DNA from: Blepharisma stoltei ATCC 30299
Lineage: Eukaryota; Protista; Ciliophora
NCBI GenBank assembly: GCA_965603825.1
Contig: CBFDEM010000035.1
Span: 716,131 to 780,130 of the forward strand
DNA length: 64,000 bases
Direction: 5' to 3'
This document shows positions 10,475 through 61,596 of the stretch, one piece after another (the first letter of the stretch is position 1; the number at the start of each line of letters is the position of its first letter). Below the pieces are notes generated by a model. The model ran no database searches and was not told the origin of the DNA. It saw only the letters and a list, made by a program, of their open reading frames with translations. The position numbers and the translations under genes were made by a program.

Positions 10475-11767
10475 ATGTCTGGAAGATGCTTCAAAGATGG
10501 TTGTACAAACCAGCTTTATGGGAAATGTGAATGCGAAGGCATTACCTTATTTTGCAAAGACCATGGCTTTGAGCACTGAGAAAAAAAATCTTCTAAAGGA
10601 CACTGATGCCTAAGAGTTTACTTTAAGCCAGCAGAAGAAATTAAGCAGCCAATTATTGATAAACTAATAGCACTCAAAGAAGATATCAAAAACTACAAAA
10701 TCGACGCACTTATCAACGCAAATACAATTATCAAGAATTTTAAAACTACGCTTGGAAGATATATTGATCAGATTAATGAAGTAGAAGCAAGAATCAATAA
10801 GATGCTTACAATTTTATATAGTGGAGAAGAGGTTCTTGACATTGCTAAAGATGATGATATGGAAAGTGTGCTTAAATTAAATGCTTCAGATGTTCAGTAC
10901 AAGATGATTGGGTGGTATATAAGGCCGTGCTACCTAGACTATAAAGATATCAACGCAGCAATTAGTAAAACTTATGGAATACCTTTTAATCCTTTTATGC
11001 AACCTATAGAAGATATCATTGAATGAAATGAACTCTCATTTTTTAGGAATTCCACTTCAAATTTTGCAACTATAAACTTAGATACATTCCAGATTTCTTC
11101 TACTGCAACTCTTCCAACTCAAGAACCAATTCATGGACACACTACAAGCTGTATACTTCCTGATTATACTTATTTCTATTGTTGCAATAACACTAGTTCA
11201 GGCTTAGTGTTTACTATTGACAAAAATAAAAATGTTAAATATCTCCAAAATTCAAAAGTAAATCATTATGCTCATCCTATCTTTTATAATAACTTCATCT
11301 ATTTAATTGGAGGAAGAAATAACTTGGCTGAAAGGTATGATTTTAAACGAAACGTGTGGGAAAGCATGGCTCCACTACCTCAAGGTTTTAATTTTACAAT
11401 TGGTTGCAATGCTTTATATAGAGATTTGATTCTTATAACGAGCTATTATATTCAAAAAATTATAATTTATAGCATAACTCAAAACAACTACCAAGAAGTC
11501 CCCAATTTGGTGTTAAATGCGAGTTATAAATTTATGCTGAGAGGGAATAAAAGAGTTTATTTATTTGAGAAAGGGGGAAGGACTTTTGAAAGTGCTGAAA
11601 ACAATGTTTTTAGTTGGACTCAAATAGGGACTAATAGCATTTATAGAAATTATAATCAATCAAGTGCTGTTCGCTATAAGGGTTGCCTTTACTTCGTTGT
11701 TTGTATTAATCAGCTGTGGAAATTCGATCTTGGTTCTAAGCAAGCATCTCAAGTCGCAACAGTCTAA
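10475..11767 (+). CDS. Cys/His Zn-finger (B-box-like) + coiled-coil + Kelch-like beta-propeller protein, copy A (3 UGA=Trp)
   Basis: Continuous frame under UGA=Trp. CFKDGC..CECE..FC..H..H at the N-terminus; Kelch motif IYLIGG..AERYD..WESMAPLP. Confidence 0.8.
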
Positions 11768-13374
11768 AATAAAATTTAGAACTTTAATAACTTTCTATAC
11801 TCTTAAACAAAATGGTAGTGTAGTAAATCTATTCTCTCACTATAGGTTTAGAGTTTAGCTAACTTACTCCTAAAACGTATAATACAAGTAAAATTGTGGT
11901 ATCATCAATAAATCTGCTTAAAAGCATGCCCTAACATTGAAGAGGGTCAATCAAGTCTGTCAGGGCTTTATAACATCTAGGTTTTAACACCATAAAATTT
12001 ATGTCAAAGTTTAGGGTATGACAAAGTTACCACTTTTCTCATTACACTTCATATATAGAGCCAAGAATCGCAATAAGACTAAGCAGTTTGATTTTCAGCA
12101 CAGTAATTAGTCTAATTTTATTTAATGTATAGCTTTTTAGGGCTATAATAATAAATGGATGCATACCCATTAAAATAGCTATATGCAGCCTCTAGATAGT
12201 GAATTTCAAAGTTGGAAGGAAGTTCAGCCTAATATTTTGAAAAAATGAGTAATTGCGATAAGCCAAATATAAGAGTCCTAGAAAATTATTAAATCACTAA
12301 ATATTCAATTAATTTTTACTAGTGAAGTGCTCCAGGATATTGTATAATTAAAAGCCGAGCATTTAAAAACAAAAGACGTAGCGGAAAACTTAAGGAACTA
12401 TATCAAAATTGACGTGAATTGAGTGAAATTGAATTGCTCAAATATAGGCATTATTATCATGGGAATTGCTAGCTTCTTGAATATAGCAAAATGCATATTC
12501 AAATCAATTTAATAAAAAAGAGCAAAGGGCATTAATCGTTTTGAAGCAATTGAAAGATATTTAGCAGCTGGGTTAGTATTCAAAGAAGATAAATTATCAA
12601 GAATAAGAGAGTTATCAGTGAAAATTCAGCAATCATCTATCAATAGACAAATCAGTGCTTGGATTTACTGGAAAGTAGATCTAAACAATATACTCGATTG
12701 AAGCCAACAAAATGAGGCTGCACAACTTTTCCATTATGCGAGTCAACTGCAGGATATTGTCTGGATCATAAAACTTTACAGGTTCTAAACAGGAGGAGTT
12801 CAAAATAGAAAAACTGTTGAAGGCTTTGAAAAAAACCGAATTTATGGATAATCTTTATTCTCCACTTCCAGCATTTCAGATTTTTACAATTAATGAAATA
12901 ATAAAAGATTGCTACGCTACTGCCAAGTTATTTCCAAACCAGAATAATTCATAGTTAGCGGACTACTGAAGTAAAGGAAAATCCCAAGCAATATCCAAAT
13001 AAAATCTTTATATAAGAGTTGCTGATATTTTTGACGAGCAATTGCTTTACTGTGGATATCATAATTGCTTTAAGAATGATGGAAACATTTTTTTATTTAA
13101 ATATCTTCTCGAAATAGTAGTATTCGATTAGTTATTATTCATTAATTATTGAAGAAAGACATGAAAGCGCATTGAAGCTAACGTATATTATTAATTTCAA
13201 TTAAACTTAGCTGAAAGTCTTGCTGGCTTTTCGAAAGAAAATCTTCAAGGCAAGCATCAACTTTGCAAGCTAGCAAATTGAAGAGATGCAGTATTTGCTA
13301 GAGAAGTGGTAAAGATTCAAATGAAAGCTGCTAAGATTATAAAGTTATAAATGCAATAATTAGCAAAAGTTATG

Positions 13375-13992
13375 AAAAAATTTTAATCCCTTTAGGCAAT
13401 ACAGAGAAAATGCTATTATATCAAATGAGCTTTCATCTTTTATGCATCCTATAAACTTAGATTTCTTCTACAGTAACCCTTTCAACTCAAGAGCCAATTC
13501 ACAAATACACCAGAAGCTGCATACTTCTAATTATACTTATTTTTATTGCTTTAATAATATTATTTCAGGGTAGCTTTTACAATTGACAAAATAAAAATGC
13601 TAAATAGCTTTAAAAATTAAAAGTGATTTGCTATGTTGATATGATATTTCATAATAGATTTATCTATTTATTAGGTGGAAAGAATAGCTTGGCTGAGAGA
13701 TATTATTTTAAGCAAGACTCATGGGAAAGAATGGCTCCATACCTTAAAGTTTGAATTTTAGTTATGGCTGCAATGCTTTATATAGAGATCTGATCCTTAT
13801 AACAAGCTATTATATCAAAAAAATCATAATTTATATATATCATACCTCAAAATAAAACAAAAAGTTTCCAAATGCATATTCTCATAAATTTATGTTGAGA
13901 AATAATAAGCTTATGCATTTGAGAAAGGCGGAAAAATTTTTGAAAGTTCTGAATACAATATTTTAAATTAGACTCAAATAGGGACTAATAGA
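13375..13992 (+). pseudogene. Decayed fourth copy of the Kelch-like gene (propeller part)
   Basis: Recognisable homology (TQEPIHKYT, IYLLGGKNSLAERY, GCNALYRDLILITSYY, TQIGTN) with stops and frameshifts; fused directly to a MORN relic. Confidence 0.8.
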
Positions 13993-15010
13993 TTAGCATT
14001 TCAAGAAAAGTTGCCTTAAAAGAAATAAAAATCTCCTATAGCTGCAAAGTGTCATTAGACACAAAATAGATCGCAAAAATTAGCCTAAAATAATCAATTG
14101 AAGCGAAATTCACCGAGGCTGCTCCTAGTAAAGCCTACTCTGCTCCTTCAGATCCACATTACCAGTATAAAGCTAAAACTAAATTTTTCCTCAAGTGAAA
14201 ACATTGGAAGATCTAGCATAAAAGAAATCCCTGAAAGCCAGATATCTGACTACTCAACTGTGACTGCTATACTTGCATTTTCAAGATCAGGGCCATTTAC
14301 AGTAAAAGAGCCTTTTAAAGATAGTGAGTCTAGAACCAAGCATGAGCCTGTAGAAATGGAAAACAGAGCTACATTCCCTATAAAATAATATTAATTTAGC
14401 ATATATATTAGAGAATGAAACGATAATTATCAAAGAAACAGCTTTGGTGTCCATGATGGGCTTCGATAAGATGGATTTTGGCTAAACAGCAAAGCAAATT
14501 AAAAGGAAGACTGATCCATGGAGATGGAGAAGTCTGAAAAGACGATAAAGCCCACGGCTCTGGAGTCTGTGTCTATGATAAACAGCATAGAGAAGGCACT
14601 GAAGCTTGACATAGCACAATACCAGGGAGAATATGTAGATGGAAAGAAAAAAGGAGGAGGTGGATCTCAATGGGCTGGTGGTCGCATTTATGAAGGCGAG
14701 TTTAAAGATAATGGCATTCATGGGGTAGGGATTTATATGTGGAGTGACGGGAGAAAATATGTAGGAGAGTGGATACATAGCAAAATGGAAGGGGCCGGAG
14801 CTTTTACGCGGATGACAGAATGTTATGAGAAGAAGCATATGTTGATGATAAAAAACAAGAGTATGGAGTGCTTGAGTGGCATATGAAAGAAAATATGAAG
14901 GAGGCTGATATAATGGAAAACAGCATGAACGAGTTTTATTATACTTCGATAGGAAGTAAAAGAGAAGGAGAATGGAAAGACGGCCAAAGAATGAAATGGA
15001 TGACTTATAA
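13993..15010 (+). pseudogene. IQ + MORN-repeat gene relic (MORN-A copy 1)
   Basis: LQSVIR IQ-like motif and YEGEFKDNGIHGVGIYMWSDGRKYVGEW MORN repeats; multiple frameshifts and stops. Confidence 0.8.
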
Positions 15011-15126
15011 TTTAGATAAGTAATATATCAATAGGAAAATTAATTATTTAATGTATTTGAGAAATTTTATTTAAGCACACATTTTATTAGGCAATAAATT
15101 AACACTGTTTTAATATTTTAAGAATT

Positions 15127-15918
15127 ATGGGAAATTACTCTTGCCTCATATGTCCAGATGAAAACGAAAAATCTACTTGAGAACTCCCATGCAACGACAA
15201 AAAGCCTAAAACGCAACCCAGTCGATTTGGAAAATGGAGCTATTTATATTGGAGAATTGGAATAAAAATAGCCTAGGGCCCGGGTTTGGGCTGCAGCTGT
15301 TTACTGATGGTTCTCAATATGAAGGGTATTTGATAAAAAATAAAGCAAATATAAAAGGAAGATTAGTCCGTGTCAATTGAGATGTCTATGAAGGCGAGAG
15401 GAAGAATGACAAGGCTTGTGGATACGGAATTTATGCATATATTTGCGGGGCAAGATATGAATTAACTGAAAAACTGATGAACAAAATGACACAGGGACTG
15501 AGTATCAGCCTAATGGATGAAAATATCATGGAGAGTATTTAAGTGGCCTAAGGCATGAGTTTAGAAAATATGAATTGGAGGATGGAAGTTCCTATGAAGA
15601 GCATTTTAAGGATAATAAATATCATGGAATGGGGGGTTTCACATGACGTGGTCGGAAAATAAGATCTATAGGAGAATGGGCAAATAATAAACTGCATGGG
15701 CAGGGCATTTTACATGGATTGATAGAGGATCATATATTGGGGAGTATGCTAATGATAAAAAGCAAGGATTTGGAGTTTTAGAGCGGCCTGATGGAAGAAA
15801 GTATGAAGGAAACTGGTATAATGACGAAGAGAATGGGATGAGCTGGTATATAGCTAAAGGAGTGAAAAAGAAAGTTGAGTGGAAAGATGGGATAATAAGA
15901 GCATGGACTACTGAATAA
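15127..15918 (+). pseudogene. MORN-repeat gene relic (MORN-B copy 1)
   Basis: MGNYSC start, GFGLQLFTDGSQYEGY and further MORN repeats; frameshifts and an internal deletion relative to copy 2. Confidence 0.8.
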
Positions 15919-17084
15919 TTGTATAATATTTATGCCTATTGTTTTAAAAATTTTTTTTTAAATTATATTGGGGTTAGTTTTCAAACAGAAATTTAGCAGA
16001 CCCAGACATGCCAGCAAAAGCCATCAATAATAGTATTAATCGAGATTATGCAAATTAAAATTATATATAAACAGAGATCCAGGATATTTATTCAGAGGTT
16101 TGCATACTAAAAGCCAAGCTATATGGGATATAGCAGAAATTTGGAAATTATCTCTTAAATTTATATATAATATACGAATGCTATTTTCAGCAATTAAACG
16201 AAATATATTAAATCGCTATTATTCCAAGCTTTAAAAGACCAAATATAATAAAATGAGCATAAGAGATCTCCTAAATAAACAACGAAAAACTGCTAGCTTT
16301 CTCACCTGCAAGGATTTTTCTGACTTTGGCTTTATTCGAAAATCTAGTTCCCTAGACTTCTATAGCGTTTTCTGTTATGCTTTCCAATATAATTTTAAGT
16401 TATTACTTTATAGCTTAGGGCTTCTTGTTCTCAACTGGGCTAAATCGATGAGCAATCATTATAAACTCAAAAGTATTAATTATTTATGCTTAAATAATGG
16501 CACATCATTAAAAAGTCCTCAAAACATATTATAAGATTTTAAAACTAATGCTGAGAAAATATTGAACAAGTGTATTTCTCCTAAAAATTAGCATTTTCAT
16601 ATGCTTTATTTCCATTTGTTTTAAAAACCTTCTCCAATTGATGTTTTTAAGTAAATTCAATGTTTAGTAGCGAAGAGGGTCTATTAAAATTAATTTAGAT
16701 TGTTTGAAAAGCTTCTGTGATTACCCGAAGATAATTTTCTCCGCTCTTCGCCACCAGCTACCTGCTGCCATCTTCAGGATTGGCGCTATGTAATGAGAAA
16801 AGTGGAAACTTTGTTATACCCTAAACTTTGACATAAATTTTCTGGTGTTAAAACCTAGCTGATATAAGACCTGATAGACTTTATGGAACCTTTCCCTGCG
16901 CAATATTAGTCTTCTAATTCAGGACATGCTTAAGCAGATTTATTGATGATACCACAATTTTACTTGTATTATACGTTTTAGGAATAAGTTAGCTAAACTC
17001 TAAACCTATAGTGAGAGAATAGATTTACTACACTACCATTTTGTTTAAGAGTATAGAAAGTTATTAAAGTTCTAAATTTTTATT

Positions 17085-18380
17085 TTAGACTGTTGCGACT
17101 TGAGATGCTTGCTTAGAACCAAGATCGAATTTCCACAGCTGATTTGGATAAACAACGAAGTAAAGGCAACCCTTATAGCGAACAGCACTTGATTGATTTA
17201 AATCTCCTGTGATGCTATTAGTCCCTATTTGAGTCCAACTAAAAACATTGTTTTCAGCACTTTCAAAAGTCCTTCCCCCTTTCTCAAATAAATAAACTCT
17301 TTTATTCCCTCTCAGCATAAATTTATGATAATTGCCATTTAACAGCAAATTGGGGACTTCTTGGTAGTTGTTTTGAGTTATGCTATAAATTATAATTTTT
17401 TGAATATAATAGCTCGTTATAAGAATCAAATCTCTATATAAAGCATTGCAACTAATTCCAAAATTAAAACCTTGAGGTAGTGGAGCCATGCTTTCCCACA
17501 CGTTTCGTTTAAAATCATACCTTTCAGCCAATTTATTATTTCCTCCAATTAAATAGATGAAGTTATTATAAAAGATAGGATGAGCATAATGATTTACTTT
17601 TGAATTTTGGAGATATTTAACATTTTTATTTTTGTCAATAGTAAACACTAAGCCTGAACTAGTGTTATTGCAACAATAGAAATAAGTATAATCAGGAAGT
17701 ATACAGTTTGTAGTGTATGCGCTAATTGATTCTTGAGTTGGAAGAGTTGCAGTAGAAGAAATCTGGAAGGTATCTAAATTTATAGTTGCAAAATTTGAAG
17801 AATTATTCCTAAAAAATGAGAGCTCGCTTGATATGATCATATTTTCTATATCATACATAAAAGGATTAAAAGGTTTTTCATAAGTTTTGCTAATTGCTGC
17901 ATTAATATCTTTATAGTCTAGGTAACACTCTTTTATATCTCATCCATTCATCTTACACCGGGCATCTGAAGCATTTAATTTAAGCACGCTTTCCATATCA
18001 TCATCTTTAGCAATATCAAGAACTTCATCTCCACTATATAAAATTGTAAGCACTTTATTGATTCTTGCTTCTGCTTTATTAATCTGATCAATATATATTC
18101 CAAGCGTAGTATTGAAATTCTTGATAATTGTATTTGCGTTGATTAGTGCGCCAATTTTGTAGTTTTTGATATCTTCTTTGAGTGCTATTAGTTTATCAAT
18201 AATTGGCTGCTTAATTTCTTCTGCTGGCTTAAAGTATAGTCTTAGGCAACGGTGCCCTTTAGAAGTTGGTTTTTCTAAATGCTCAAGGCTGTGCGCTTTG
18301 CAAAATAAGACAATGCCTTCGCATTCACATTTCCCATAAAGCTGCTTTGTACAGCCATCTTTGAAGCATCTTCCAGACAT
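17085..18380 (-). CDS. Zn-finger + coiled-coil + Kelch-like protein, copy B (UGA=Trp at 17940-17942)
   Basis: Two track ORFs are in frame across a TGA that aligns with TGG in copy A. Confidence 0.85.
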
Positions 18381-18874
18381 AATTATAGAATCATAATAAG
18401 CTATTATTTCTTTTCTTATTTAAAGTTTATTTCCCCAGATAAAAATTATAATCCTAACAGCTCGATTATATTTTATATTCTTAACCTTATCTGATTAGAT
18501 TCTTAAGATATAGCATAGGCATATTTTCCTTTAATAGTTTATTATATATTTATAGTGCTCTTTAAAGCTCTCTTATTAATTAAAATACGTCTTCTAAATA
18601 TTTATTTGAACTATTCATATCCTACTTTATTTTGTAATGGAGCAGAAATGAAGTCACAAGGCGCCCTGGGCTTATAGACCAAGATTTGGCACTGGCGAGG
18701 AATCTTATTACAGATAGGGTTTAGATGATGATGATGATTATGACAGCTTATTCTGGATGAGAAATTCTTGGACGATGCTGATAAATTCTCAGAAAATGAT
18801 TAAATAAGATTTTGAACGAGAAGAAGGTGATGAGGAAGAAGGAGAATACAGGGAAAGTGCACTGATTACTCTAA

Positions 18875-19482
18875 AGATATCTCCATTGTAACGGACTAAT
18901 CTTCCTTTTATGTTTGCTTTATCTTTTATCCAATACCCTTCATATTGAGACCCATCAGTAAACAGCTGCAGCCCAAACCCGTGCCTTTGGCGTTTTTTAT
19001 AACATTCTCCTATATAAATAGATCCATTTTCCAACTCGACTCGGTTGCACTTCATTCTTGGCTCATTTTCAGGAAATAGCTCATCAATTTTATAAGGCTC
19101 TAGTTAGCTCTGTCAACAGCTGTTGAGTAATCAGGGACTTCTTCTTTTGGGATTTCTTTTAAAAAAGATCTGGTAATATGGGCAGAGAAGGAGGGAAAAA
19201 ATGCTTAAGTAGGGGAGAGTCTCAGCTATTTTGTGCTTTTATTGGTTTTGTCCTGCTGATGATTTGAGTTATTTTACGATCTAAATAGCCACGGAGGACA
19301 CTTTGGAGATGGACGATTTCCAGCTTGCTGATTTGAATTTCAGTTTTGAGGCTTTTTATCATCGTCGCATGGAAATTCTTGTTCGAGGCTGGGCTTATGG
19401 AAGGTCTTTGCATTTCTTGGAAACTTTCTGTAATAAATTTTTCGTTTTCGTCTCGATATGTGAGGCAAGTGTAATTTCCCAT
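18875..19482 (-). pseudogene. MORN-B copy 2 (3'-truncated)
   Basis: MGNYTC start, IQ motif LQSVLRGYLDR, GFGLQLFTDGSQYEGYW; stops, and homology ends abruptly near 18875. Confidence 0.75.
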
Positions 19483-19597
19483 AGCTGTTAAAATATTATA
19501 ATAGTTTAGTTTATGCCTAATAAAATTTGTGCTTAAATAAAATTTATCAAATACATTAAATAATTAATTTTCCTATTGAAATATTACTATCTAGATC

Positions 19598-20720
19598 ATA
19601 AGTCATCCATTTCATTCTTTGACCATCTTTCCATTATCCTTCTCTTTTACTTCTAATAAAATCCGTCCATGCTGTTTTCCATTATACCAGCCTCCTTCAT
19701 ATTTTCTTCCATCAGGCACCCAAGTACTCCATATCCTTATTTTTTATCATAAAACATATCTTCATTTATATGTCATTCCATAAAAGTTCCGATCCCTTCC
19801 ATTTTACTATATATTTTTTATTATAATAAATTCTGCATTCATTAATAATAAATTTTATAATAAATGTATTATGGAGTATCTATTTTCCTAAATATTTTCT
19901 ACCGTCACTCCTCATATAAATCCTCGCCCTATGAAAACCATAATCTTTAAGCTGACCTTTATAAAAATCCCCCAGCCCATTCAAATCTGTCTTTCCCTTG
20001 TTTCTTTCCGCCTGCATATTCTCCTTGGTATCGTGCTCTGCCAAATTTCAGTGCCTTCTCCATTCTGTTTAGCATCTTTCCAATATAGCTCCGTTCATAT
20101 AGACATAGACTCGAAAGCCGTGGGTTTTGTCGTTTTTTCATTCACCTTTATAGATTTCTCCAACCCCATTGATCAGTCTACCTTTTAAATTTACTTTGTC
20201 GTTTAACCAAAATCCATTATATCGAAGCCCATCATGGACACCAAAGCCGTGTCTTTGATAATTATTGTTTAATTCTCGAATATATATGCTAAATTAACTA
20301 AATTTTAATTATTTAATTAATGGGGAGTATGCCCAGTTTTCCATTCGACAGGCACATACTTGGTTCTATGCTCGCTATCTTTAAAAGGCTCTTTTACTGT
20401 AAATGGTCCTGGTCTTGAAAATGCAAGATGAGTAGTCAGTGATTTCTTTTATGCTAGATCTTACAATATTTTCACTTGCAAGAAAATAATTAGTTTTAAC
20501 TTTTACTGAGTATTTGAATCTGAAGGGGCAGAAACACTTCAACTGACTTTGTTAGGTTAATACTTTTGATTTTTTGGGTGATCTATATAGCGCCTAAGTA
20601 CACTTTGCAGCTTTACGATGCCTCATAAAGAGATTTTTAGCTCTTTTAAAGGGACTGTTTCTTGTTATGCTAGGTTGCTTTATACTCTGATAGGTTAAAA
20701 GCTTTCTTATTCATAACAGG
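19598..20720 (-). pseudogene. MORN-A copy 2
   Basis: Reverse-complement homology to 13993-15010 (e.g. gaagcccatcatggacaccaaagc); frameshifts. Confidence 0.75.
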
Positions 20721-21664
20721 CTACGCCCTAAATTCGTAGACTTATAAAAATCAGCATTTCATCTATTACCCTCTCTATTTTGCCTTACTGGTGATTAAAT
20801 AGTCTGCAAAGCGTCATACTGAAGACTTAATTTTTCCCCTTGAATATTTTTCGTGCTTAATTCCTCAAACAATTCTTCCTTGTTTTTTGTTAAACTCTTG
20901 GAATTTGCTTTTAGAAGCAATAGAATCATAAGCTATTTATATGCTTGATGTCTTTTTTATTTAGCTCGATTCCTAGCTCGTTTTCTAAAATAAAATCATG
21001 GGACATTTTATTTTCAATAGAAATAATTTCTAGCAGGGGTCTTTAGTTGGACTTGCCGGGTCTTTAAATTTTGATTTAATTGGTTGGTTTAGGGTTTTGG
21101 ACCTGTATCTTTGCCCAAATAGCGGGACTGGTTAGATTTGAGCAGGTAAGACTTGGATTTGGATGATAATTTTCCAATGATGGAGTTATACCTTCTTATT
21201 AAATTGTCCTTGTGAGCTTCGTAAGACTTAGCCAAGGATAGTTGAGAAATTCATAATTAAGACATAAGGATTTTAAGGGGAAAATGCTGAGGGAATGCAC
21301 AATTTCGCTTTTCATGTATAATCAGTTTTGCATTCATTATTCTTTTGCGCTTAATTTGGTCCGAATTAAACGGATGATAAATCGTAAATATTATTATTAT
21401 TATTCTTTTGCGCTTATAAATGGCATTTTGAAAGAATTTAAATAATTGGCAAAGAAATGAAACTGAAAATTGGAATTGAATCGTCAATTTTTGCCTGTGT
21501 AATTATTTAGCAAGGCAATAGATTCTTTAAGTAGCCATTACAATTTATAGCAATTTGTATTCATCACGCTTTATTTATTGATATTTGCATTTATTTTTTG
21601 ATAATTATTTACAAATATTAATAACTTAATTTTATGAATTTCTAAAATACGCATCATTTTGGGA

Positions 21665-23957
21665 AATATGATTAATTGGCAGATTTACAATTATTTACCT
21701 TTGCAGAACCAAACCCTGACAGAGTAGAATACCAGTACATCGATCTAGACTCTCCAGTCATCGAAATAAAATTCTGCGGCGCTCAAGACGAAGTCACGCT
21801 TCTTCTCACCACTGAAAATTCAATATATCGCTCTGAAAACAAAGACTTTTCATGGAAGCTGCTTTCCCCAATTCTAGAAAAAGAAAAAAAAGGCAGGATC
21901 AACAGTAGGCAAGGTAATCCAAATAATCTTAAATCCAGCCTACAAGCAAGTCGTGGTGATGCTAGGAAGCACAGGCCTTAACTGGCTTTCAGAAGATTGT
22001 GGCAAAACAATAAAAGCTTTAAACTATGGACAACCAATGGAAGAATATCACTTTCATCCTACAGAAAGAGACTGGGGATTAGCAGCGTCCTGGAGCAAAT
22101 GCTCAGATTTCGTAGGTAAATCCTGCAAAAAATACAGAGCTGTTTATCTGACAAAAAATTTAGGAGAAACTTGGACAAAAGTTGTGGATTATACTGTCCA
22201 ATTTTCATGAGCATATAAAAATTTAGCACAAAATATCAGAAAAAATATCCCAAAAAAAAGAATTTATGTCACAAGAAGTTTGGAGGAATGAGACCAAAAG
22301 GTGGCAGGATGAAGCTATAATGTTGATATGATAAAAAGTGATGATTTTTTCAAAACCTCTTCAATTTTAGTCCCACATTGAATAAATTTTTACTAGCTGA
22401 AAAATACATTTTAGTAACTCAATTTATTGAAGAAGGATCACAAGATGTTTCTAACGAAGAAAATATAGAGAAGTTCTATAAAGCAGAATTGCCTATTAGA
22501 AGAATTCCTGAGAATAGCTATACTTTATTAGACACAAGTGAAGGGTCAATTTTTCTCAATATAAACGATTCTGGCCCAGACTCAAGATATGGAAGCATCT
22601 ACAAATCTGACGTCACAGGCAGAAAATTTGTATTCTCTCTCCTTCGCAACGTCAGAGATGCAAAAGGATACTGCGATTTTAACAGATTTTATGAGCTGAA
22701 GGAATTTATATAGCCAATATCTATGACCAGGAAAAAACTAACGAAGAATTTGATGCTTCTACCACAAAAAGGCAAACAATTATCGCAGATTTAGACCAAA
22801 GCTACAAGAAAACTGTTATTTCATTCAAAAAAGGAGGATTTTGGAATCCTTAACCCTCCAGAAATGGATTCTAGTGGTAAGCATGCCCTCTGCAAAGACA
22901 AAGACTGTTCCCTTCATTTACATTCCATTACTTCTCAAAAATTCGGTCCTGTTTATTCCTCAGTAAATGCTGTCGGAATTATCATAGGTGTGGGAAATGT
23001 TGGAAAATATTTATCCAATAAGCCTGACGAACTCAATACCTATTTATCAAGAGATGGCGGACTAACCTGGACTGAAATTAAAAAAGGGTCATATATTTAT
23101 GAAACCGGTGGCCAGGATTCTATTATAGTAATGCCTGATAGCCAACAAGCCACAGATAAGTTCTATTTATCTTGGGATGAGGGCCTTACTTGAGACTCAG
23201 TCAAATTTACTGACATTCCTATAGAAATTGACGATATTATCATTGAGTCCAAAGCGACATCTCAGAATTTCATTATATTTGGCAAAATATGAGAAAAAGG
23301 AGCCAGTATAGCCATTGATTTTTCTTCACTTCATCAGCGACAATGCAAAGGTGCTGATAAGCCAGGAGAAAGCAATAGTGACTATGAGCTGTGGAGGGAG
23401 GTCTTGGGATAAATGCTTGTTAGGCAGAAAAGTAGAATATGTCAGGAGAAAAAGAGAAAGCAAATGCTTTAATCGAGAAAAGTTCAAAAGAGGCACGTTT
23501 CTACATAATTGTGCATGCGTTATACCTAATTTTGAGTGCGATTTTTGATTTTCCAGAGAAAATGGAGGGCTGTGTAATAAAATTGAAGGGTCTATTGGTG
23601 AAGAAAAATGCCAGAACGGGGAAGAGTATTATGAAATTCCAAGTGGGCTCAGAAAAATATCCGGAGATACCTGTGAGCACGGGCTCAGTTTTTATTTAGA
23701 CCCACTTAAATATAAATGTGACCCCGAGTGAAATCATCAATCTCCTTTTCAATATAGCAATTATAATTGCCTTGATTTAACTTGCATTTTCAAATTTTAT
23801 CTGCAGAAAATGGACTGAATTTTAAAGGTCTAAATTTTTTAGCAAGGCTAGGTAGTTCGAAGGCCTCAGTGTTGCTCCTGAAGGTATGAAAAAAGAGCTT
23901 CCTGCTATAGGAAATGACACTTTTGACGAAGAATCCAAATTTAATCCTAATTCTTAA
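21665..23957 (+). pseudogene. VPS10/sortilin family gene, frameshifted
   Basis: Asp-box/BNR motifs (SEDCGKT, TKNLGETW, YLSRDGGLTW, SWDEGLT), CSLHLHS, GIIIGVGNVG and Cys-rich 10CC CLLGRK..YVRRK; at least five frame changes. Confidence 0.85.
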
Positions 23958-24917
23958 AATTATTATAAAAAATGAGCATCCGTAATGGGCTGGAGAATGC
24001 TTTAAAAGAAATACAAACTCATCCTGACAAAATCGACGAGTGTCTGAAAAAGACTATTTTTAAAGATTCTGATTCAATATTTATTGAATACAAAAGAAGA
24101 CCTTGAAAAACAAAAAATGCTCTCATAAATGAATTGCTGATATCGATGATCTGAATTCGTTAATTTGCTTTACTTTTTCAGCAAAAAAAGGCAAAAAATA
24201 AAGATCCTGAGCTAAGGCTTAAGGTTTGACAGAAAAAATCCTAGCTCTTAAATTCACAAGAAACTTGCTAATCAATCCGAACCATTGCACCTGAAACCGA
24301 GCTCCTAGCCAGCGGAGCAAAACCCTGGCGCCTGTAGTTAATAATGCAATTCCGAAGAACCGAAAAGTCTTCAAACCACGACTTCGTGGTCTAAAAACTG
24401 AATGTATGAGGCTCCCATAGATATTGAGGAATCTTTTCGAAATTAATTGGATGTGCTGGAAGTAAATATGAAAATACTCCTATTGATATTTTCAGCTTGG
24501 CCGGGTTTAATGAAGCCTTTCTGAAAAGAGATCAATTTTATAAACGACGTATTAGGCCGAGACTGTGTTGAGATACTCCGAAAAATGCAGATAAAAGCCG
24601 CTGAATCTAAAGAAGAACATCATCATCTTAACCCTATCCGTAATAAGGTTATTCTGCTCCATTACAAAATAAAGCAAGATATGAATAATTCAAATAAATA
24701 TTTAGAAGACGTATTTTAATTAATTAGAGAGCTTCAAAGCACAATATAAAAATATGATAAGCTATTCCAAGAAAATATGCCTGTGCTATATCTTAAAAAT
24801 TTAATCGGATAAGACTAAGAACATAAAATATAATTGAGCTGTTAGGATTATAATTTTATCTGGGGAAAGAAACTTTAACTAAGATAAGAAATAATAGTTT
24901 ATTATGATTCTATAATT

Positions 24918-26213
24918 ATGTCCAGTGGAAGATGCTTCAAAGATGGTTGCACAAACCAGCTTTATGGGAAATGCGAATGCGAAGGAATTACCTTATTTTG
25001 CAAAGAGCACAGCTTTGAGCACTTAGAAAAACCAACTTCTAAAGGCCATCGATACCTAAAGCTATACTTTAAGCCAGCAGAAGAAATTAAGCAGCCAATT
25101 ATTGAAAAACTAATAGCACTCAAAGAAGATATCAAAAACTACAAAATTGAACTACTTATTAACGCAAATACAATCATTAAGAATTTTAATACTACGCTTG
25201 GAATATATATTGATCAGATTAATAAAGCAGAAGCAAGAATCAATAAAGTGCTTACAATTTTATATAGTGGAGATGAGGTTCTTGATATTGCTAAAGATGA
25301 TGATATGGAAAGCGTGCTTAAATTAAATGCTTCAGATGCCCGGTGTAAGATGAATGGATGAGATATAAAAGAGTGTTACCTAGACTATAAAGATATTAAT
25401 GCAGCAATTAGCAAAACTTATGAAAAACCTTTTAATCCTTTTATGTATGATATAGAAAATATGATCATATCAAGCGAACTCTCATTTTTTAGGCATAAAA
25501 CTTCAAATTTTGCAACTATAAATTTAGATACCTTCCAGATTTCTTCTACTGCAACTCTTCCAACTCAAGAACCAATTCATGGACACACTACAAGCTGTAT
25601 ACTTCCTGATTATACTTATTTCTATTGTTGCAATAACACTAGTTCAGGCTTAGTGTTTACTATTGACAAAAATAAAAATGTTAAATATCTCCAAAATTCA
25701 AAAGTAAATCATTATGCTCATCCTATCTTTTATAATAACTTCATCTATTTAATTGGAGGAAATAATAAATTGGCTGAAAGGTATGATTTTAAACGAAACG
25801 TGTGGGAAAGCATGGCTCCACTACCTCAAGGTTTGGATTTTACAATTGGTTGCAATGCTTTATATAGAGATTTGATTCTTATAACGAGCTATGATATTCA
25901 AAAAATTATAATTTATAGCATAACTCAAAACAACTACCAAGAAGTCCCCAATTTGGTGTTAAATGCGAGTTATAAATTTATGCTGAGAGGGAATAAAAGA
26001 GTTTATTTATTTGAGAAAGGGGGAAGGACTTTTGAAAGTGCTGAAAACAATGTTTTTAGTTGGACTCAAATAGGGACTAATAGCATTTATAGAGATTATA
26101 ATCAATCAAGTGCTGTTCGCTATAAGGGTTGCCTTTACTTCATTGTTTATCCAAATCGGCTGTGGAAATTCGATCTTAGTTCTAAGCAAGCATTTCAAGT
26201 AGCAACAGTCTAA
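24918..26213 (+). CDS. Zn-finger + coiled-coil + Kelch-like protein, copy C (UGA=Trp at 25359-25361)
   Basis: Same architecture as copies A and B; in frame across one TGA. Confidence 0.85.
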
Positions 26214-40621: not shown

Positions 40622-40705
40622 TTTTATTTGTAGATTCAAAACTTTTAATAGCTTAAGTTAGCAAAAGCTCTTTTGATATGAATTATAAAGAAATTTATAT
40701 TTTAG

Positions 40706-41251
40706 TTAATTTTCGGATTTTATAAAACCTCCAACCATTTGCTTCATAACTTTAATGGTAGAGTTATTACCAATTCCTAATGTTTGCAGGTCTATTTCAC
40801 CATTGCTGGTTAGAGAAAGGTACTTATTTCCTTTTATAATTGTCAATTCTTGGTTTCCAAAAATCTGCAAGAATCTTTCATAGAGGTGCTTAAATTGCAG
40901 ATTTGGAGGAACTTGAATTGTCCTTTTAGTTCCTTCATTGTCTTCAATGACTATAGAAATTTGCTGAGGAGCTTGCACTGGAGGCTGTTCAGGAGCAGGT
41001 GGGTTGGGGTTTTGAGGCCTTTGAACACTAACAACGCGGATAACTGAATTATTGGTGATATTTAGTTGCTGCAGTGTGAGGTTTTGGGAGTTCGGACCGA
41101 TGTATTTATTTCCATACATGACTGTGAGTTCGGTTCCACCAAACATAGTCTGCAGATGTCTAAGAAGCTCAGAATATTGCCAATCACTCTTGCCTTGCAG
41201 AATTTTTGTTGTTCCGGTAGCATCTTCGATTCTTAAAGTAAGATTTGACAT
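40706..41251 (-). CDS. Tandem di-ubiquitin-like protein UBL-1, C-terminal VGG + 6-aa tail
   Basis: Two internally homologous ~72-aa beta-grasp-like units (LRIEDATG..TLQQLNITNNSVIRVV and IVIEDNEG..DLQTLGIGNNSTIKVM) with a Pro/Gln linker; ends KQMVGG-FIKSEN. Confidence 0.8.
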   Translation of the reverse strand: MSNLTLRIEDATGTTKILQGKSDWQYSELLRHLQTMFGGTELTVMYGNKYIGPNSQNLTLQQLNITNNSVIRVVSVQRPQNPNPPAPEQPPVQAPQQISIVIEDNEGTKRTIQVPPNLQFKHLYERFLQIFGNQELTIIKGNKYLSLTSNGEIDLQTLGIGNNSTIKVMKQMVGGFIKSEN

Positions 41252-41509
41252 ATTTTATAGAAACATGCACAATGGAAAATTAATAAAATTCATAAATTTA
41301 AGAGTTTTAAGAAAGCTATTTGCGGAATTTCAAAAAAATTAGTAACTTATAAGCGAATTTGGCTAGTTTTACTAATAGCATATTTTAACTACTCAGCTGC
41401 TTAAAGTTCAATTGTAATAAACTCGTTACTGAAATATAGAAACTAAGCCAAATTTCAATTCATAGGAATAAATGTGTTTCTATCTAATCAAAAATTATTA
41501 TTAAAAATT

Positions 41510-42180
41510 AGTTTATATTTCTGTAAGACACCAAATAAAGGAGATTCCAATCAGGACTTCATCAATTGACCACTTAATCGTTAAATTCCTACCATAAGCC
41601 TTTTTTATCATCTTTAGCAAACGCTATAAAATGGTTTCCATAATAGAATATCGCTCCAAATATATTATATCTGAACGCTTCACCACTGCAGCATACTTAA
41701 TGACTCAGACAAATTTTTAGTAATCCCTCCAAATTTTTATAGCAATATTGAAGAATACCTTCGAAGCTACAAAACCCAGCAATATTCAGAAGCAATGATT
41801 TATTAAAATGTAACTTATGCGGCTCAAATTCGATTTCCATGATGAATGAGTCCTTATAAACAAGCCAACTTACTTGATATTGTCATTTCAAGGCATAGAT
41901 GCTATAGTCAGACTTCCTAAAAGTTTGGATTTTGAAGAAATCGGTGCTCTCTGTTTGAGTTGTGTCTTATACAGTTCATGGGTCTTCTGGGCATTATACA
42001 ACATACACAAAAGAAAATTACTCATCAATACATTATAATGATAAGCATATGCAAATATTGATTTTCAGAATGGAATTCCTAGGGTTTATTTAGTTTTTTA
42101 TTTGCTGAATTCTTTGGTTTCTTACTAAAAGCACTGCTGCATATGTATATTTAAGCGAGCATTGTCCAAATATTGGAGCT
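41510..42180 (-). pseudogene. Heavily decayed USP (USP-3)
   Basis: His-box relic YNIFGAIFYYGNHFIAFAKD..W*EFND..LYLVSY with stops; upstream part barely alignable. Confidence 0.6.
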
Positions 42181-42220
42181 TTATTAATTATTAATAGTAA
42201 ATCTTGTTTCCTAAATGTTT

Positions 42221-42673
42221 TTATCCAAATGCATCTCTAAATGTTCTTTCTCTTGCTATATTGAATCATTCTTCTCTGCTTATTAAGCAAATATCAGCTG
42301 CCTCACACATAAATCCATGCTCTGGCTCAGGCCTGTTCAGTAATTCGATGAGATAGTCAATGATAACCCTGGGATGGCAGTTTGGGTTTCACATATGGTT
42401 AAGCAGAGAATGACAAACTCTTCCATTGCTAGGGAAAATATTTGGATGGAATATGGGTGTCTGAAAATATACTTTGGGAGGCTTGCTTGGGTATTTTTTG
42501 GAAAATTTTATTAAAAATTCAAAAAGACCGCCTTCAAAAGCAGTGCCTTCAGGCCCATTGAGATTTCCGAGTCATTCATAGTAGTCTCCCTGGTGAGTAT
42601 TCACAGAAACAAAAGGCTGAGGATTTGCTTGCAAATCATTCAGTTCAGTCATAAGTCGTTGCAACGCTGCCAT
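42221..42673 (-). CDS. Ubiquitin-conjugating enzyme E2-1 (150 aa; 3 UGA=Trp; absent from the ORF track)
   Basis: [67 protein letters not shown]. Confidence 0.9.
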
Positions 42674-43239
42674 ATCAAGCTTATAAATTGTAATTCTACA
42701 AAAGTTAATAGCTTTAAAGAAGTAAAAAAGTAATCTTTTAAATTTTCGTTAAACTATAATTATAAATTACCCCATTCCTTGCTCTAAAGTATATTTTATA
42801 GCTTAAAAATTTCTGCTTATAGATAGTTATTTCCTTGATGTATGCTCACAGGCAAGAAGCTTAGGATTACCTTCCAAAAACTTAGTTCAGGTATGGTTTA
42901 TATTATTCTGATCAATTAAAAGAAAAATGCTATATCATTTTTCCTCCTTGCATATATCCATTCTATAGAATCTCTTAGTAAAAGTAATAATCATGATTAC
43001 ACAAGCCTGAACTCTTATTTATAAGTTGTCACCATAGAAAAGCATGGCGATTTTATCCAACTTTTAAATATCAATATAGCAACTACGTATTATGGCTAAA
43101 TTTAAAGTTTATTTTATAGTTTATTCTGGATTAAAGGCCCATTTGTATATCATTAACTTAGCCCTAATAACTCTAAGCTTGGCTACAACTAATCAAAATT
43201 TTATTTATAAGTCAATTTGCATTCAATAGATTTATAAGT

Positions 43240-43719
43240 TTATCCCATAGCGTGTCTATACGTATGCTCTCTTGCCTTCGCTATAAATTCATCTTTACTT
43301 CTTTTAAGGACAGTGGTTGGGTCATGGGCATACCCACCAGCTGCATTTGGGTCATTTAATAAAGCAATTATATAGCTTATAATGGTCTTTGGAGTAAATC
43401 TACTATTCCACCCACCGCCCACGCCACCACGAAAAATCGGCAAGCAAACATTTCCATTTCCATTTCCACTGTCTGAATAAACATTTGGATGAAAAATAGG
43501 AGTAATAAATTTGCACGTAGGAGGGTTAGTTGGATAATCAGCAGGGAAATTTAGCTGAAATTCGAAAAGTCCTCCTTCATATGGAGTTCCAGGCGGGCCA
43601 TTGAGAGTTCCCTTCCAAAGTCTGAAATTGTTTCCATCAATATCAGCTGTCGCATAAGGTAAAGGATCAGATCTCATCTCATTCAAGTCTCTCATAAGTC
43701 TTTCGGTTGCGCTGTCCAT
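43240..43719 (-). CDS. Ubiquitin-conjugating enzyme E2-2
   Basis: GPPGTPYEGG, FPADYPTNPP, FHPNV..GNVCL; Gly-rich inserts around the active-site Cys. Confidence 0.95.
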   Translation of the reverse strand: MDSATERLMRDLNEMRSDPLPYATADIDGNNFRLWKGTLNGPPGTPYEGGLFEFQLNFPADYPTNPPTCKFITPIFHPNVYSDSGNGNGNVCLPIFRGGVGGGWNSRFTPKTIISYIIALLNDPNAAGGYAHDPTTVLKRSKDEFIAKAREHTYRHAMG

Positions 43720-44298
43720 TTTTAATTATTAAGATTCTATAATTTTTTGAGGTTTTGTGCTATGATAGATTGATTTTATTTTATTTCATTATATAAATTA
43801 TAGATATCTAGCAATTCTTTGATTGAAACTCTTGCAGAAGAAAATTCAGATGCAGAGAATTTCTTTAGGATTGCTAAATACCAAAAAATAATATGCAGCA
43901 TGAACGATTATGAAGAAAACCTTGAGACTTCTTATTTTCTTCTTTATTAATTTTCTGGAAATTTTGGTTATTTCTGTGATCGAATGACAGAGCTATTCAA
44001 TAGCAGCTCCCTCTGTCTATAGAGACACAAATAATTAGTTAAAATTCATAATTCTATAAATTTCGCCCTATTGAATATATAAAAATGCAGCAAGAAGAAA
44101 AAGCTTTTAAAATTTTGATTCAGCTGTTGAAATGATATAAATAATTGAGAATTTATAAAAATTACAAAATGCGAGATATTACTTTATAAATGCAAATTAA
44201 ATAATAACAAATAAAACCTTTAATGAAATTAAAAATTATTTATTCAATTAAATCAAAAATTTATTTATGACATATTATCCATCTATAATTTATAGAAT

Positions 44299-44862
44299 AT
44301 GCAGGGCAACGACAACTCAATGGTAACTATAACTTTAATCGACATCGATGGTCGGCCAGCAGAAAAAGAGATAAATCTTAATTGAACCTTCTCTTTATTG
44401 GCAAGACCTCTATTAAACGAATATGAAGCAGATAATCAAAGTCTCGCTCTGAATAATGGAACACTTTTAAGGTTGGTAGATCATCAAAGCGAAAAACTTC
44501 GTGACTTAGGATTTGAGGGCGAAAAAGTAGTAAAAATAATGCATGCAAAAAAAGGCTGTCCAGATATATCAGTTCGCGTTGAAAATTTGATAAACTCATC
44601 AAAATTTAGTGTTATGGTAAACCCTTTATCAAAATGTTTTGATGTCTGCCAAATGCTTGAAACCAGGACTGGATTACGTCTATTAAATAATAGAGAAGCT
44701 TCTGTTATGGTGAAATCCGTTTATTTGAATTTTGAAAACAATTATTATAAAACGCTGAGAGATTTAAAAATAAAGCACAATGAAAGTTTGAATATCTTGA
44801 AATTTGAGCGTGGAGGTCTTTATTGTGCAAAACGAATCAATTATTATAAAGCACCAAATTAA
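44299..44862 (+). CDS. Tandem di-ubiquitin-like protein UBL-2, C-terminal RGG + 14-aa tail (1 UGA=Trp)
   Basis: MQGNDNSMVTITLIDIDG..NWTFSLL..KLRDLGFEGEKVVKIMHAKKGC, then ISVRVEN..KTLRDLKIKHNESLNILKFERGG-LYCAKRINYYKAPN. Confidence 0.75.
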
Positions 44863-44929
44863 ATGAAAAGAGAGTCGAATTGAATAATGATTAAACTTTT
44901 AGTAATTTTCTGATATATTTCTTATAAAA

Positions 44930-45628
44930 TTCATGCTGAGTCTCAAAAATATGCCAAAAACATATATTTTAATTGTTTTCTTATTTAATTTCATGTATTA
45001 AGAAATTTTTGACCCAAGCATACAGTCTATTTTTCTTATTCCAAGCTTATTACGAATGCCTCTCTCTAACTTTTAAAAAGTATCAGTCTTTTTGGTATCA
45101 AAAACACGAACTTCTTCATTAAATCAAACATAATTCTTATTTCATCCTTAAGCACTCTCAGAGTAGCCGAACTAGTAAATCTAAAGCTTTTAAAGAAAAA
45201 TTTCCTTGTGTTGCCAAATCTAGTCTCTTTTTGTAATCTCTGATAGTTTCTTCTTTCTAAATTCGATGTCTTGGTTAATTTTAAATTTAGTTTTCATTAA
45301 ATTAGTGAACTCAGAAAGCTTCATATTGCTACTTCTTATTTCAAGAAATTTCTTCTATCTCCATATACTACAGAGATATGCAAATCAGGGATAATTTTGA
45401 CCTCTAAGCAGCTGCTGTTCATGATTTTAAATCAAAGAGAGATTTTTCGCCATCAAGGTTGAAATTGAGGTAGGTTGCATTTTTGAGATTAGTGAGGATT
45501 TTGAGATCATTAGTCAGGGAAAGGGCAGCTTGTATATTGTAATAGAGCTCAAAAAATATCATACTGGCTGAGGCTTTAACTACAAAGTTTTCTCCTCCAA
45601 TTACATGAATTCTAATCCTTATGGACAT
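44930..45628 (-). pseudogene. Multi-UBL gene relic UBL-3
   Basis: First unit MSIRIRIHVIGG..YLNFNLDGEKSLFDLK resembles UBL-2 (YLNFENN..TLRDLK); frameshift at ~45425, then further decayed units with stops. Confidence 0.55.
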
Positions 45629-59580: not shown

Positions 59581-61596
59581 ATGAAAATTCCTGAGGATCA
59601 GAAATACTGAGATTTATGCGCATCTATTTGCTTAATTAATACTATATCAGAATATCTTCATAATGATGAAGATCAAATTAGCAGTTTAATGCAAATAGAG
59701 CAAGCTCTAAAAGATTCTCAAAAATTTAACTTGAAAGAAGAATCAATAAAACAGCTGTGAGATCATACTGAAACGAAAAAAGATAGCATTTGAAGCTGGC
59801 TCAACATTATTTTGGATGGTTGTTATCTATGAAATTTGCTTTTTTATCGAGAAGAAAATACAACTTATATTTCTTCATTAAATTATTGAAAGTTAGCCTG
59901 AGGGGAATATATGAAAAATAAGTCTGCTTACTTAGCTTGTATCAGCAGTACAGATAAGCCTAAAGTCTTATTAGAAAATAGCTATGGTAAATTCTTGCTG
60001 GTGTTAGCATTTTCTAATTCTGAAAAAATTATGTATTATTTTAAGAAAAATTCATGATTTGCGTTAGGGAATAGAGAAGAAAGCATGGTAACTTTTCTCC
60101 CTGATATGTATTTATTGTACATAAGAACGGAAGATTGTCAATTTCACGAAGATATTAATTACGCTGAACAATTTTTGATTTTGAATAGCATGGATAACCT
60201 ATCAATTTTTTCAAAATTGGAACATTCATATTATTCTGAGCGATATGAGAAATCAAGAGACATAGAGACATTGACTAACGAAAATGATATTCTTAAAAAA
60301 TCGCTCAATAAAGAAGCACATAAATATTCGGAGAGACTTGAGAATCAAGAAAGAGATATAGAAAGATTGACTGCTGAGAATGAAACTCTTAACAAATCAG
60401 TAAATGAAGCTTCAGGTGCAATGTCAAAACAAAAATCTGAAATTGAAAAACTTAAAAATGAAATTTCTAATTTAAAACAGCTATTAAATAATAAAGAAAG
60501 AGAAGCAGAAAATCTAGAAAAAGCTAATAAAGCATTGGAATCTGAGCTCAACAAGCAAAAGCAAAGCAATAACTCGCTCCAAAGTGAATATGATAAGTTA
60601 ATGCAGTATAATAATAATTTATCTTCGAAAAACAAAGAGCAAGTGCAATCCGAGCTTGAAAAGTTTTATAGCAAGATAAATCAAGCCTGTGATGAACTTA
60701 ATCAAGGCATAATCTCAACAATTCATTGTCCAGAAGCTGAACTAGTTCGTAAAGATCACACCCTCAAACAGTATGACCTTTCAGCAAGTTCTCATTTGAA
60801 AGAATCAAAAACTTCTATATTTCCTAATATTAAACAGGGAATTCCCAATCTCGGAAACACTTGCTATTTGAACTCAGTTTTGCAAATCTTCGCAAGCACA
60901 AATACGCTTTTTGAATTTATTGGTACAAAAGAGGATAGCTTGTCAATAGCCTTATATAATGTTCTTTTAGCTATTCGAATGGGAAGCTTTGAAGCATTAG
61001 TAAGATCATTAAAATCAGAGATTGACGCAGTCTTTCCGATGTTCTTGCATGGAGAGCAACAGGATGCAAAAGAACTACTCGTAACACTATTTGATCATAC
61101 TTTAGATGCAAGAGCAAAATCATTATTCTCTTTTTGCTACCATGAGAAGCTGCCTTGCGATAACTGCGGAAAAGTATCACTTCTAATAAGGGAGGAAAAT
61201 TTACTTCTTATTCCAAGCCATGAAACAAGTATTACATCTTTTCTTAATAAAATAACAGAACCAAAAAGCATTCAAGGTCAAGGACTGAAATGTGAATCAT
61301 GCAATCAATTTTCAATTTTTAAAACAGAAATCACTAGTATTGAGTCTCCACATTACTTAATTTTCTACTTGTCTAGGTCAGAAAATGGAAACCCAAGGCC
61401 TTATAATTTTTTAGAAGAGACTTTAACATTAAATAGCCAAACTTACTGCTTGTATGGAGTTATTTGCTATTATAAGAATGGAAATGGAGGGCACTATACA
61501 GCATTTACAAGGGATGGAGACCAATGGAACAATTATAATGACAATATTGTTGGAATTAAAACCTTTGACCAAAATGATGCTTATTTAGGGTGTTAG
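59581..61596 (+). CDS. USP with degenerate N-domain + coiled coil (USP-8); intronless; 3' end overwritten by telomere
   Basis: Frame open from ATG 59581 with 7 UGA=Trp; GIPNLGNTCYLNSVLQ, QQDAKEL, GGHYTAF, WNNYND; ends AYL-GC-stop inside telomeric repeats. Confidence 0.85.

Follow-up and report, generated by a model that had tools for sequence, protein, structure and literature searches.

The right end of a somatic chromosome of the ciliate Blepharisma stoltei, analyzed here as a window of 64,000 nucleotides (C35:716131-780130), was found to carry two genes for tandem ubiquitin-like (UBL) proteins, UBL-1 and UBL-2, in an island together with genes for activating (E1) and conjugating (E2) enzymes and ubiquitin-specific proteases (USPs). 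We consider it probable (roughly 70%) that both proteins are precursors of ISG15-style tandem modifiers in a tagging pathway private to Blepharisma. Throughout the genome, the family to which they belong co-localizes with a diverged E1 subfamily, with E2s and with a compact USP subfamily. Public databases hold the UBL proteins only as unnamed or auto-labelled "ubiquitin-like domain-containing" entries, and a literature search found no paper on them or linking Blepharisma with ubiquitin-like modifiers. The B. stoltei genome paper never mentions ubiquitin (PMC9942806).

The genome of B. stoltei consists of 64 telomere-to-telomere contigs with CCCTAACA telomeres and tiny introns, and UGA is read as Trp (PMC9942806). 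Translation of TGA as Trp almost doubled the long open reading frame (ORF) content of the window and joined split USP, E1 and other genes to full length. All gene models therefore use genetic code 4. Protein analyses were made with stop-free pieces or public protein ids.

UBL-1 had been described in a first-pass annotation as two units with a Pro-rich linker, ending in QMVGG/FIKSEN (the slash marks the end of the Gly-Gly), and this layout was found in an intact ORF of 181 amino acids (aa). For UBL-2, the two units, the FERGG followed by a tail, and the first unit ending in KKGC were likewise seen in the sequence. The extent of the gene had to be revised, however: the earlier ORF (44398-44862) is partial, and the start lies about 100 nucleotides further upstream with a sense TGA inside. 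This TGA falls in the conserved Trp column of the family, where five paralogues have TGG and six have TGA. Since TGA at a conserved Trp is a Trp codon in B. stoltei, the UBL-2 gene is intact. The switching of this column between TGG and TGA from one paralogue to another also led us to reject selenocysteine and stop as readings of the codon.

The two beta-grasp folds expected of each protein were predicted for both. An AlphaFold2 (AF2) model of UBL-1 alone had a mean predicted local distance difference test (pLDDT) of 78 and contained two beta-beta-alpha-beta-beta-beta domains (residues 3-77 and 98-170), with linker residues 80-93 and tail residues 173-181 disordered. Linear di-ubiquitin and ISG15 ranked best in a Foldseek search with UBL-1 (E 1e-11 to 1e-8; identity 12-17%). 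For UBL-2 the ESM Atlas model (pLDDT 0.71) had tandem ubiquitin-like proteins as its nearest structures, with a template modelling (TM) score of 0.59 over residues 2-170, and ISG15 was among its feature neighbours. On the Pfam ubiquitin model (PF00240; gathering cut-off 25.4 bits) the scores obtained were 14-17 bits, with 14.2 bits for UBL-1 and 17.1 bits for a single-unit member, and UBL-2 gave no match. Together with the low identity to ubiquitin and ISG15 in the structural matches, these scores agree with the earlier statement that none of the known UBLs is closely resembled. A family profile made without UBL-2 detected both UBL-2 units (24 bits; ubiquitin 5 bits), which speaks against a chance resemblance.

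A six-frame profile search of the genome (41.46 Mb, 64 contigs) identified 36 family units, which when read in code 4 amount to at least 18 genes or relics. These include proteins of one, two or three units (Table 1), and broken copies are present besides. Ubiquitin residues 2-76 are matched by the family profile over its whole length, which places the family Gly-Gly on G75-G76. Gly-Gly was found at this position in at least 13 paralogues, followed by tails of 0-14 residues that are unrelated in sequence and length (among them F, N, R, T, FIKSEN, KIQGLNNYQN and DFVCFYIPYK). A Gly-Gly that is kept while the tails vary freely is the pattern expected of trimmed precursors. Conservation of the Gly-Gly extends to a transcript from the MMETSP collection, from outside B. 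stoltei, which is 89% identical and ends in KGG/F. The ratio of nonsynonymous to synonymous substitution rates (dN/dS) of paralogue pairs was 0.08-0.48, indicating selection.

A fold and a Gly-Gly register which are those of ubiquitin could also mean that the UBLs merely diverged from ubiquitin, NEDD8 or SUMO and use the housekeeping enzymes. We regard this as extremely unlikely. Family members scored 24-52 bits on the family profile whereas ubiquitin scored 5 bits, the Pfam ubiquitin scores are under the cut-off, and none of the canonical ubiquitin loci of the genome was picked up by the family profile at E <= 0.01. In most family members the position of ubiquitin Arg72 is occupied by Gln, Phe, His, Lys or Cys. 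Arg72 of ubiquitin is required by UBA1, and the scarcity of Arg at this position argues that a dedicated E1 is needed.

With respect to a polyubiquitin type of organization, no Gly-Gly was found in the inner units of UBL-1, UBL-2, the three-unit protein P0010 or a three-unit protein from contig C18; in the latter, Gly-Gly is absent between all units. Gly-Cys replaces Gly-Gly four times, in the first units of UBL-2 and P0040 and at the C-termini of the C18 three-unit protein and a copy on C55. The Gly-Cys sites are window 44548-44559, L006:1252-1959 (minus), L022:644-913 (minus) and L015:661-1257, two of which are protein ends (KGC-stop). Two UBL-2-type paralogues on contig C9 (L015:661-1257 and L016:524-1102) begin with MGGSSSS and MGGKSST, a possible N-myristoylation signal; UBL-2 of the window has no Gly2.

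When UBL-1 and the 82-aa member were used as queries in word-indexed homologue searches, only Blepharisma proteins and the one MMETSP transcript were returned, and no UBL-1 orthologue outside B. stoltei was among them. In a profile search of 1.84 billion representatives the close relatives were from Blepharisma only, and beyond these came generic polyubiquitin-like repeats and the protein P0108 (L025:10001-10267). P0108 is a single UBL of 88 aa that ends in KGG/T and scored 33 bits on the family profile compared to 5 bits for ubiquitin; it is a possible distant relative. Its contig (17.8 kb, 24.6% GC) also reads TGA as Trp, and no E1, E2 or USP was found there under any code tried in the 8-10 kb around the gene. 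A scan of metagenome contigs with the family alignment gave no match. Judged from these searches, the family is found almost only in Blepharisma.

The first-pass annotation had proposed that the UBLs are matured by neighbouring USPs and that they be co-folded with the USP catalytic domains. We co-folded residues 225-498 of the neighbouring USP, P0154, with residues 95-181 of UBL-1 (unit 2 and tail) in three runs. The interface score ipSAE was 0.88 in all three runs, whereas the best control reached 0.01; 0.88 is attained by 51 of 78 solved complexes and by two of 108 mismatched pairs. The runs shared at least 88% of their contacts, with a partner pLDDT of at least 86. The confident interface comprised Cys238, His460 and Asn476/Asp477 of the USP and residues 169-178 of UBL-1, that is the Gly-Gly and the first tail residues. 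The UBL-1 Gly-Gly is accordingly placed by the models, as a prediction, at the catalytic Cys and His in the cleft of the neighbouring USP.

The family occurs in about eight islands, mostly subtelomeric, and most lie no more than about 40 kb from contig ends. Taken together, the stretches up to 20 kb from family genes make up 1.08% of the genome and contain 48 of the 131 USP, 20 of the 105 E2 and seven of the 16 E1 matches found genome-wide, USPs being present at eight of ten family loci. All USPs of these stretches score weakly on the Pfam model and therefore represent a diverged subfamily. The E1 of the window has paralogues of 100% identity on C15 and of 85% and 77% on C11, where they lie beside UBL genes; its close paralogues are thus confined to other islands of this kind. 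The next closest paralogue, on C28, is 47% identical and is presumably the housekeeping UBA1.

Many UBL-domain proteins act non-covalently, and UBL-1 and UBL-2 might likewise never be conjugated and instead serve the expanded USPs and E2s, for instance as binding partners, regulators or decoy substrates. The co-fold shows USP binding only, Gly-Gly is missing or replaced by a terminal Gly-Cys in some members, a three-unit member carries none between units, and no E3 was found nearby, all of which would fit such a role. We nevertheless find it unlikely, since a Gly-Gly at the exact ubiquitin position in at least 13 paralogues, with tails free to vary, is the signature of a processed and activated C-terminus, and since the family is accompanied by an E1 subfamily of its own.

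Table 1. Features of the UBL island and types of family member elsewhere in the genome. Positions are those of the window unless a contig (C) is named.
Feature	Position	Strand	Description
UBL-1 gene	40706-41251	minus	181-aa di-UBL precursor, public protein P0001; ORF from ATG, no internal stops
UBL-1 unit 1	41021-41251	minus	ends VVSVQRPQ, without Gly-Gly
UBL-1 Pro-rich linker	40961-41020	minus	residues 78-97
UBL-1 unit 2	40727-40960	minus	ends KQMVGG
UBL-1 Gly174-Gly175 codons	40727-40732	minus	from family profile aligned to ubiquitin
UBL-1 tail FIKSEN (6 residues)	40709-40726	minus	predicted disordered; stop codon 40706-40708
UBL-2 gene	44299-44862	plus	code-4 ORF, 187 aa; 180 aa from annotated start 44320 (P0006)
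UBL-2 unit 1	to 44559	plus	ends AKKGC
UBL-2 in-frame TGA read as Trp	44383-44385	plus	conserved Trp column of family
UBL-2 unit 2	44560-44817	plus	ends KFERGG
UBL-2 Gly-Gly codons	44812-44817	plus	from sequence; aligned with family Gly-Gly
UBL-2 tail (14 residues)	44818-44859	plus	from sequence
Three-unit UBL pseudogene	45007-45628	minus	tblastn of P0010; match split over all three frames, many stops
Pseudogene first unit, still open	ORF 45419-45628	minus	74 aa, P0027
Whole island	38401-61583, up to telomere		7 USP genes/relics, 6-7 E2 genes/relics, 1 E1, 3 UBL genes; genome-wide Pfam scans, code-4 ORFs
Neighbouring USP, P0154, 498 aa	39125-40621	minus	full-length protein; Pfam UCH E 4e-19; catalytic domain residues ~225-498, Cys238, His460, Asn476/Asp477
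E2 (UBC fold)	42221-42673	minus	PF00179 99.5 bits; 3 sense TGA
E2, 159 aa	43240-43719	minus	Pfam UQ_con E 1e-34; HPN motif and catalytic Cys, insertion between
UBA1/UBA6-type E1, 1017 aa	56394-59447	plus	FCCH, 4HB, ThiF, SCCH, UFD domains; best PDB matches UBA1, UBA6
Single unit, 82 aa	C8, C15		ends KGG/F
Single unit, 84 aa	C11		ends KGG/N
Single unit, 95 aa	C12 (two copies), C1		ends LGG, then a 10-residue tail
Single unit, 85 aa	C12		GG is the C-terminus
Two units	C9 (three genes)		end KGG+10, NGG+9, QGG/R
Three units, P0010	C15		ends NGG/FILLKL
UBL-1-like, truncated	C18		ends NGG/FIKSKN

The third multi-unit UBL copy of the island had been called a pseudogene, and its frames and stops compared to the intact reference paralogue P0010 (244 aa) bear this out. 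Contig C15 ends in a second copy of the whole island (window 38401-61583), which lies at about 667-691 kb and is about 100% identical. The offset between the two copies is 86,513 and then 86,493, so that a 20-nucleotide indel lies between UBL-1 and UBL-2. To the left of about 38.4 kb contigs C35 and C15 differ, and C15 carries the additional intact P0010.

Telomere repeats of TGTTAGGG fill the last approximately 2.4 kb of the window, beginning at 61584. They start within the last USP ORF (59581-61596), the C15 copy of which matches the Pfam model to its end. Residues 1-224 of P0154 (39950-40621, minus) gave no Pfam match, and one stretch of them resembles a decayed USP C-terminal motif. A stop-riddled USP relic (41482-42220, minus) is located downstream of the E2 at 42221-42673, and relic and E2 lie under one transcript-like contig (X2 record 12, 41482-42672), for which a long 3' end or a transcribed pseudogene is possible. 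Outside the island, at 10475-26213 and 12-28 kb from it, the window contains three near-identical genes of about 430 aa with a Cys-rich N-terminus and Kelch repeats (Kelch_6, E 3e-8); no RING domain was seen in the three.

Contigs of four public runs (X1-X4) from one 2022 study, for which the library type RNA is a guess, were found to form gene-sized blocks over UBL-1 (40683-41199), both E2s, the USP, and parts of UBL-2 and the pseudogene. The UBL-2 contigs were of low depth and spanned 44416-44763. Intergenic DNA was not covered by the contigs, which contained no splice joints and no intron in UBL-1. This pattern is consistent with transcription. It also bears on the idea that the window copies are decaying subtelomeric duplicates of little or no present function, the single-unit members elsewhere being the working modifiers. 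The island does hold a frameshifted UBL, USP relics, E2 fragments and a USP cut by the telomere. The closest UBL-1 paralogue (C18) is truncated at its N-terminus, with a dN/dS of 0.48 relative to UBL-1, and the failure to find a UBL-1 orthologue outside B. stoltei points the same way. However, UBL-1 and UBL-2 are intact, identical at two chromosome ends and located under transcript-like contigs, and UBL-2 has intact two-unit paralogues of the same layout (P0040 and C9:506k). Loss of function in the window copies appears quite improbable.

In the tagging pathway that we favour, the UBL precursor would be made with a short tail after the conserved Gly-Gly. A compact USP of the same island would bind the last beta-grasp unit and cut after the Gly-Gly, and the island UBA1/UBA6-type E1 would adenylate the freed glycine and hand the modifier to a diverged island E2. 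The modifier would then be joined to target lysines, and the same USPs could take it off again. Because the first unit is without Gly-Gly, we propose that it would stay attached, giving one two-domain tag.

The computational tests by which the first-pass annotation suggested that its reading could fail, concerning the fold and the conservation of Gly-Gly, all turned out favourable to it. Several observations nevertheless weigh against the tagging pathway. Cleavage, activation, transfer and targets of the UBLs are steps that we infer. The many solved USP-ubiquitin complexes may raise the co-fold score of 0.88, which therefore expresses likeness to those complexes and is not proof of a maturase, and a co-fold model cannot tell which USP, if any, would cut. 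Single-sequence AF2 of UBL-2 gave a pLDDT of 30 and no usable model, and several family members are broken or without Gly-Gly. Tandem and segmental duplication, by which the islands grew, inflates the co-localization counts and makes them non-independent. No RING, HECT or RBR E3 was recognized by Pfam among the ORFs of the window. The contigs of the four runs could derive from the 100% identical C15 copy, from which the window copy is inseparable, as well as from a library other than the guessed RNA, and their coverage of UBL-2 is thin.

To our knowledge, the ubiquitin-like modifiers known to be served by a cascade of their own are few; the majority are ancient and widespread, with ISG15 and FAT10 as vertebrate exceptions. 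If our reading is true, B. stoltei has a young cascade that has been seen almost exclusively in Blepharisma and comprises numerous modifier variants, some of them with two or three domains. The clustering of the tag gene with those of its E1, E2 and protease is unusual in eukaryotes. The system would offer a natural set of matched tag, protease and E1 variants for the study of how specificity evolves in UBL systems, and its proposed steps can be tested directly with recombinant proteins. It would also raise the question of why a ciliate needs a second tagging pathway. As the islands are subtelomeric, repeatedly duplicating and decaying, and carry diversified modifiers, matched USPs and E2s and a private E1, one might speculate that they constitute a rapidly evolving system of conflict or immunity, comparable to ISG15 but of independent origin in a ciliate, which marks foreign or non-self targets instead of taking part in housekeeping proteolysis. 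We regard this as unlikely; the targets could then be symbionts, viruses, or partner- or germline-derived material.

Compared to known systems, the UBLs are of the ISG15/FAT10 type by architecture, with Gly-Gly only on the second domain, and by descent they are not members of the ISG15/FAT10 family. ISG15 of vertebrates (with UBA7, UBE2L6 and USP18) also has two tandem beta-grasp domains with Gly-Gly on the last only, a C-terminal tail to be removed, and its own UBA1-type E1, E2 and USP. It differs in that sequence kinship to the Blepharisma UBLs is undetectable at 12-17% identity, and in that the latter lack the LRLRGG motif and have a long, disordered, Pro-rich linker. Furthermore, modifiers, USPs and E2s each occur in Blepharisma as many paralogues and not singly, their genes are clustered, and in the searches made they are restricted to this genus. 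FAT10 (with UBA6 and USE1) is likewise a di-UBL with a non-ubiquitin tail before Gly-Gly, and the island E1 matches UBA6 and UBA1 about equally well. However, the Gly-Gly of FAT10 is free from synthesis on, without a need for trimming, FAT10 shows no sequence kinship to the Blepharisma proteins, and its genes are not clustered.

Ubiquitin and NEDD8 precursors share with the family the beta-grasp fold and the Gly-Gly register and have a tail that a cysteine protease cleaves off, as proposed here for the family, and the 82-aa single-unit members (KGG/F) look just like them. Unlike polyubiquitin, the multi-unit proteins of Blepharisma are not cleavable strings, since inner Gly-Gly is absent, and they fall below the Pfam ubiquitin cut-off. 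Bacterial operon-encoded UBL systems, for example of the Bil type, have modifier, E1, E2 and deconjugating protease side by side, and the island likewise encodes modifier, E1, E2 and protease together. The island enzymes are, in contrast, eukaryotic (UBA1-type E1 and USP), with the genetic code and base composition of the host and no sign of a recent bacterial origin.

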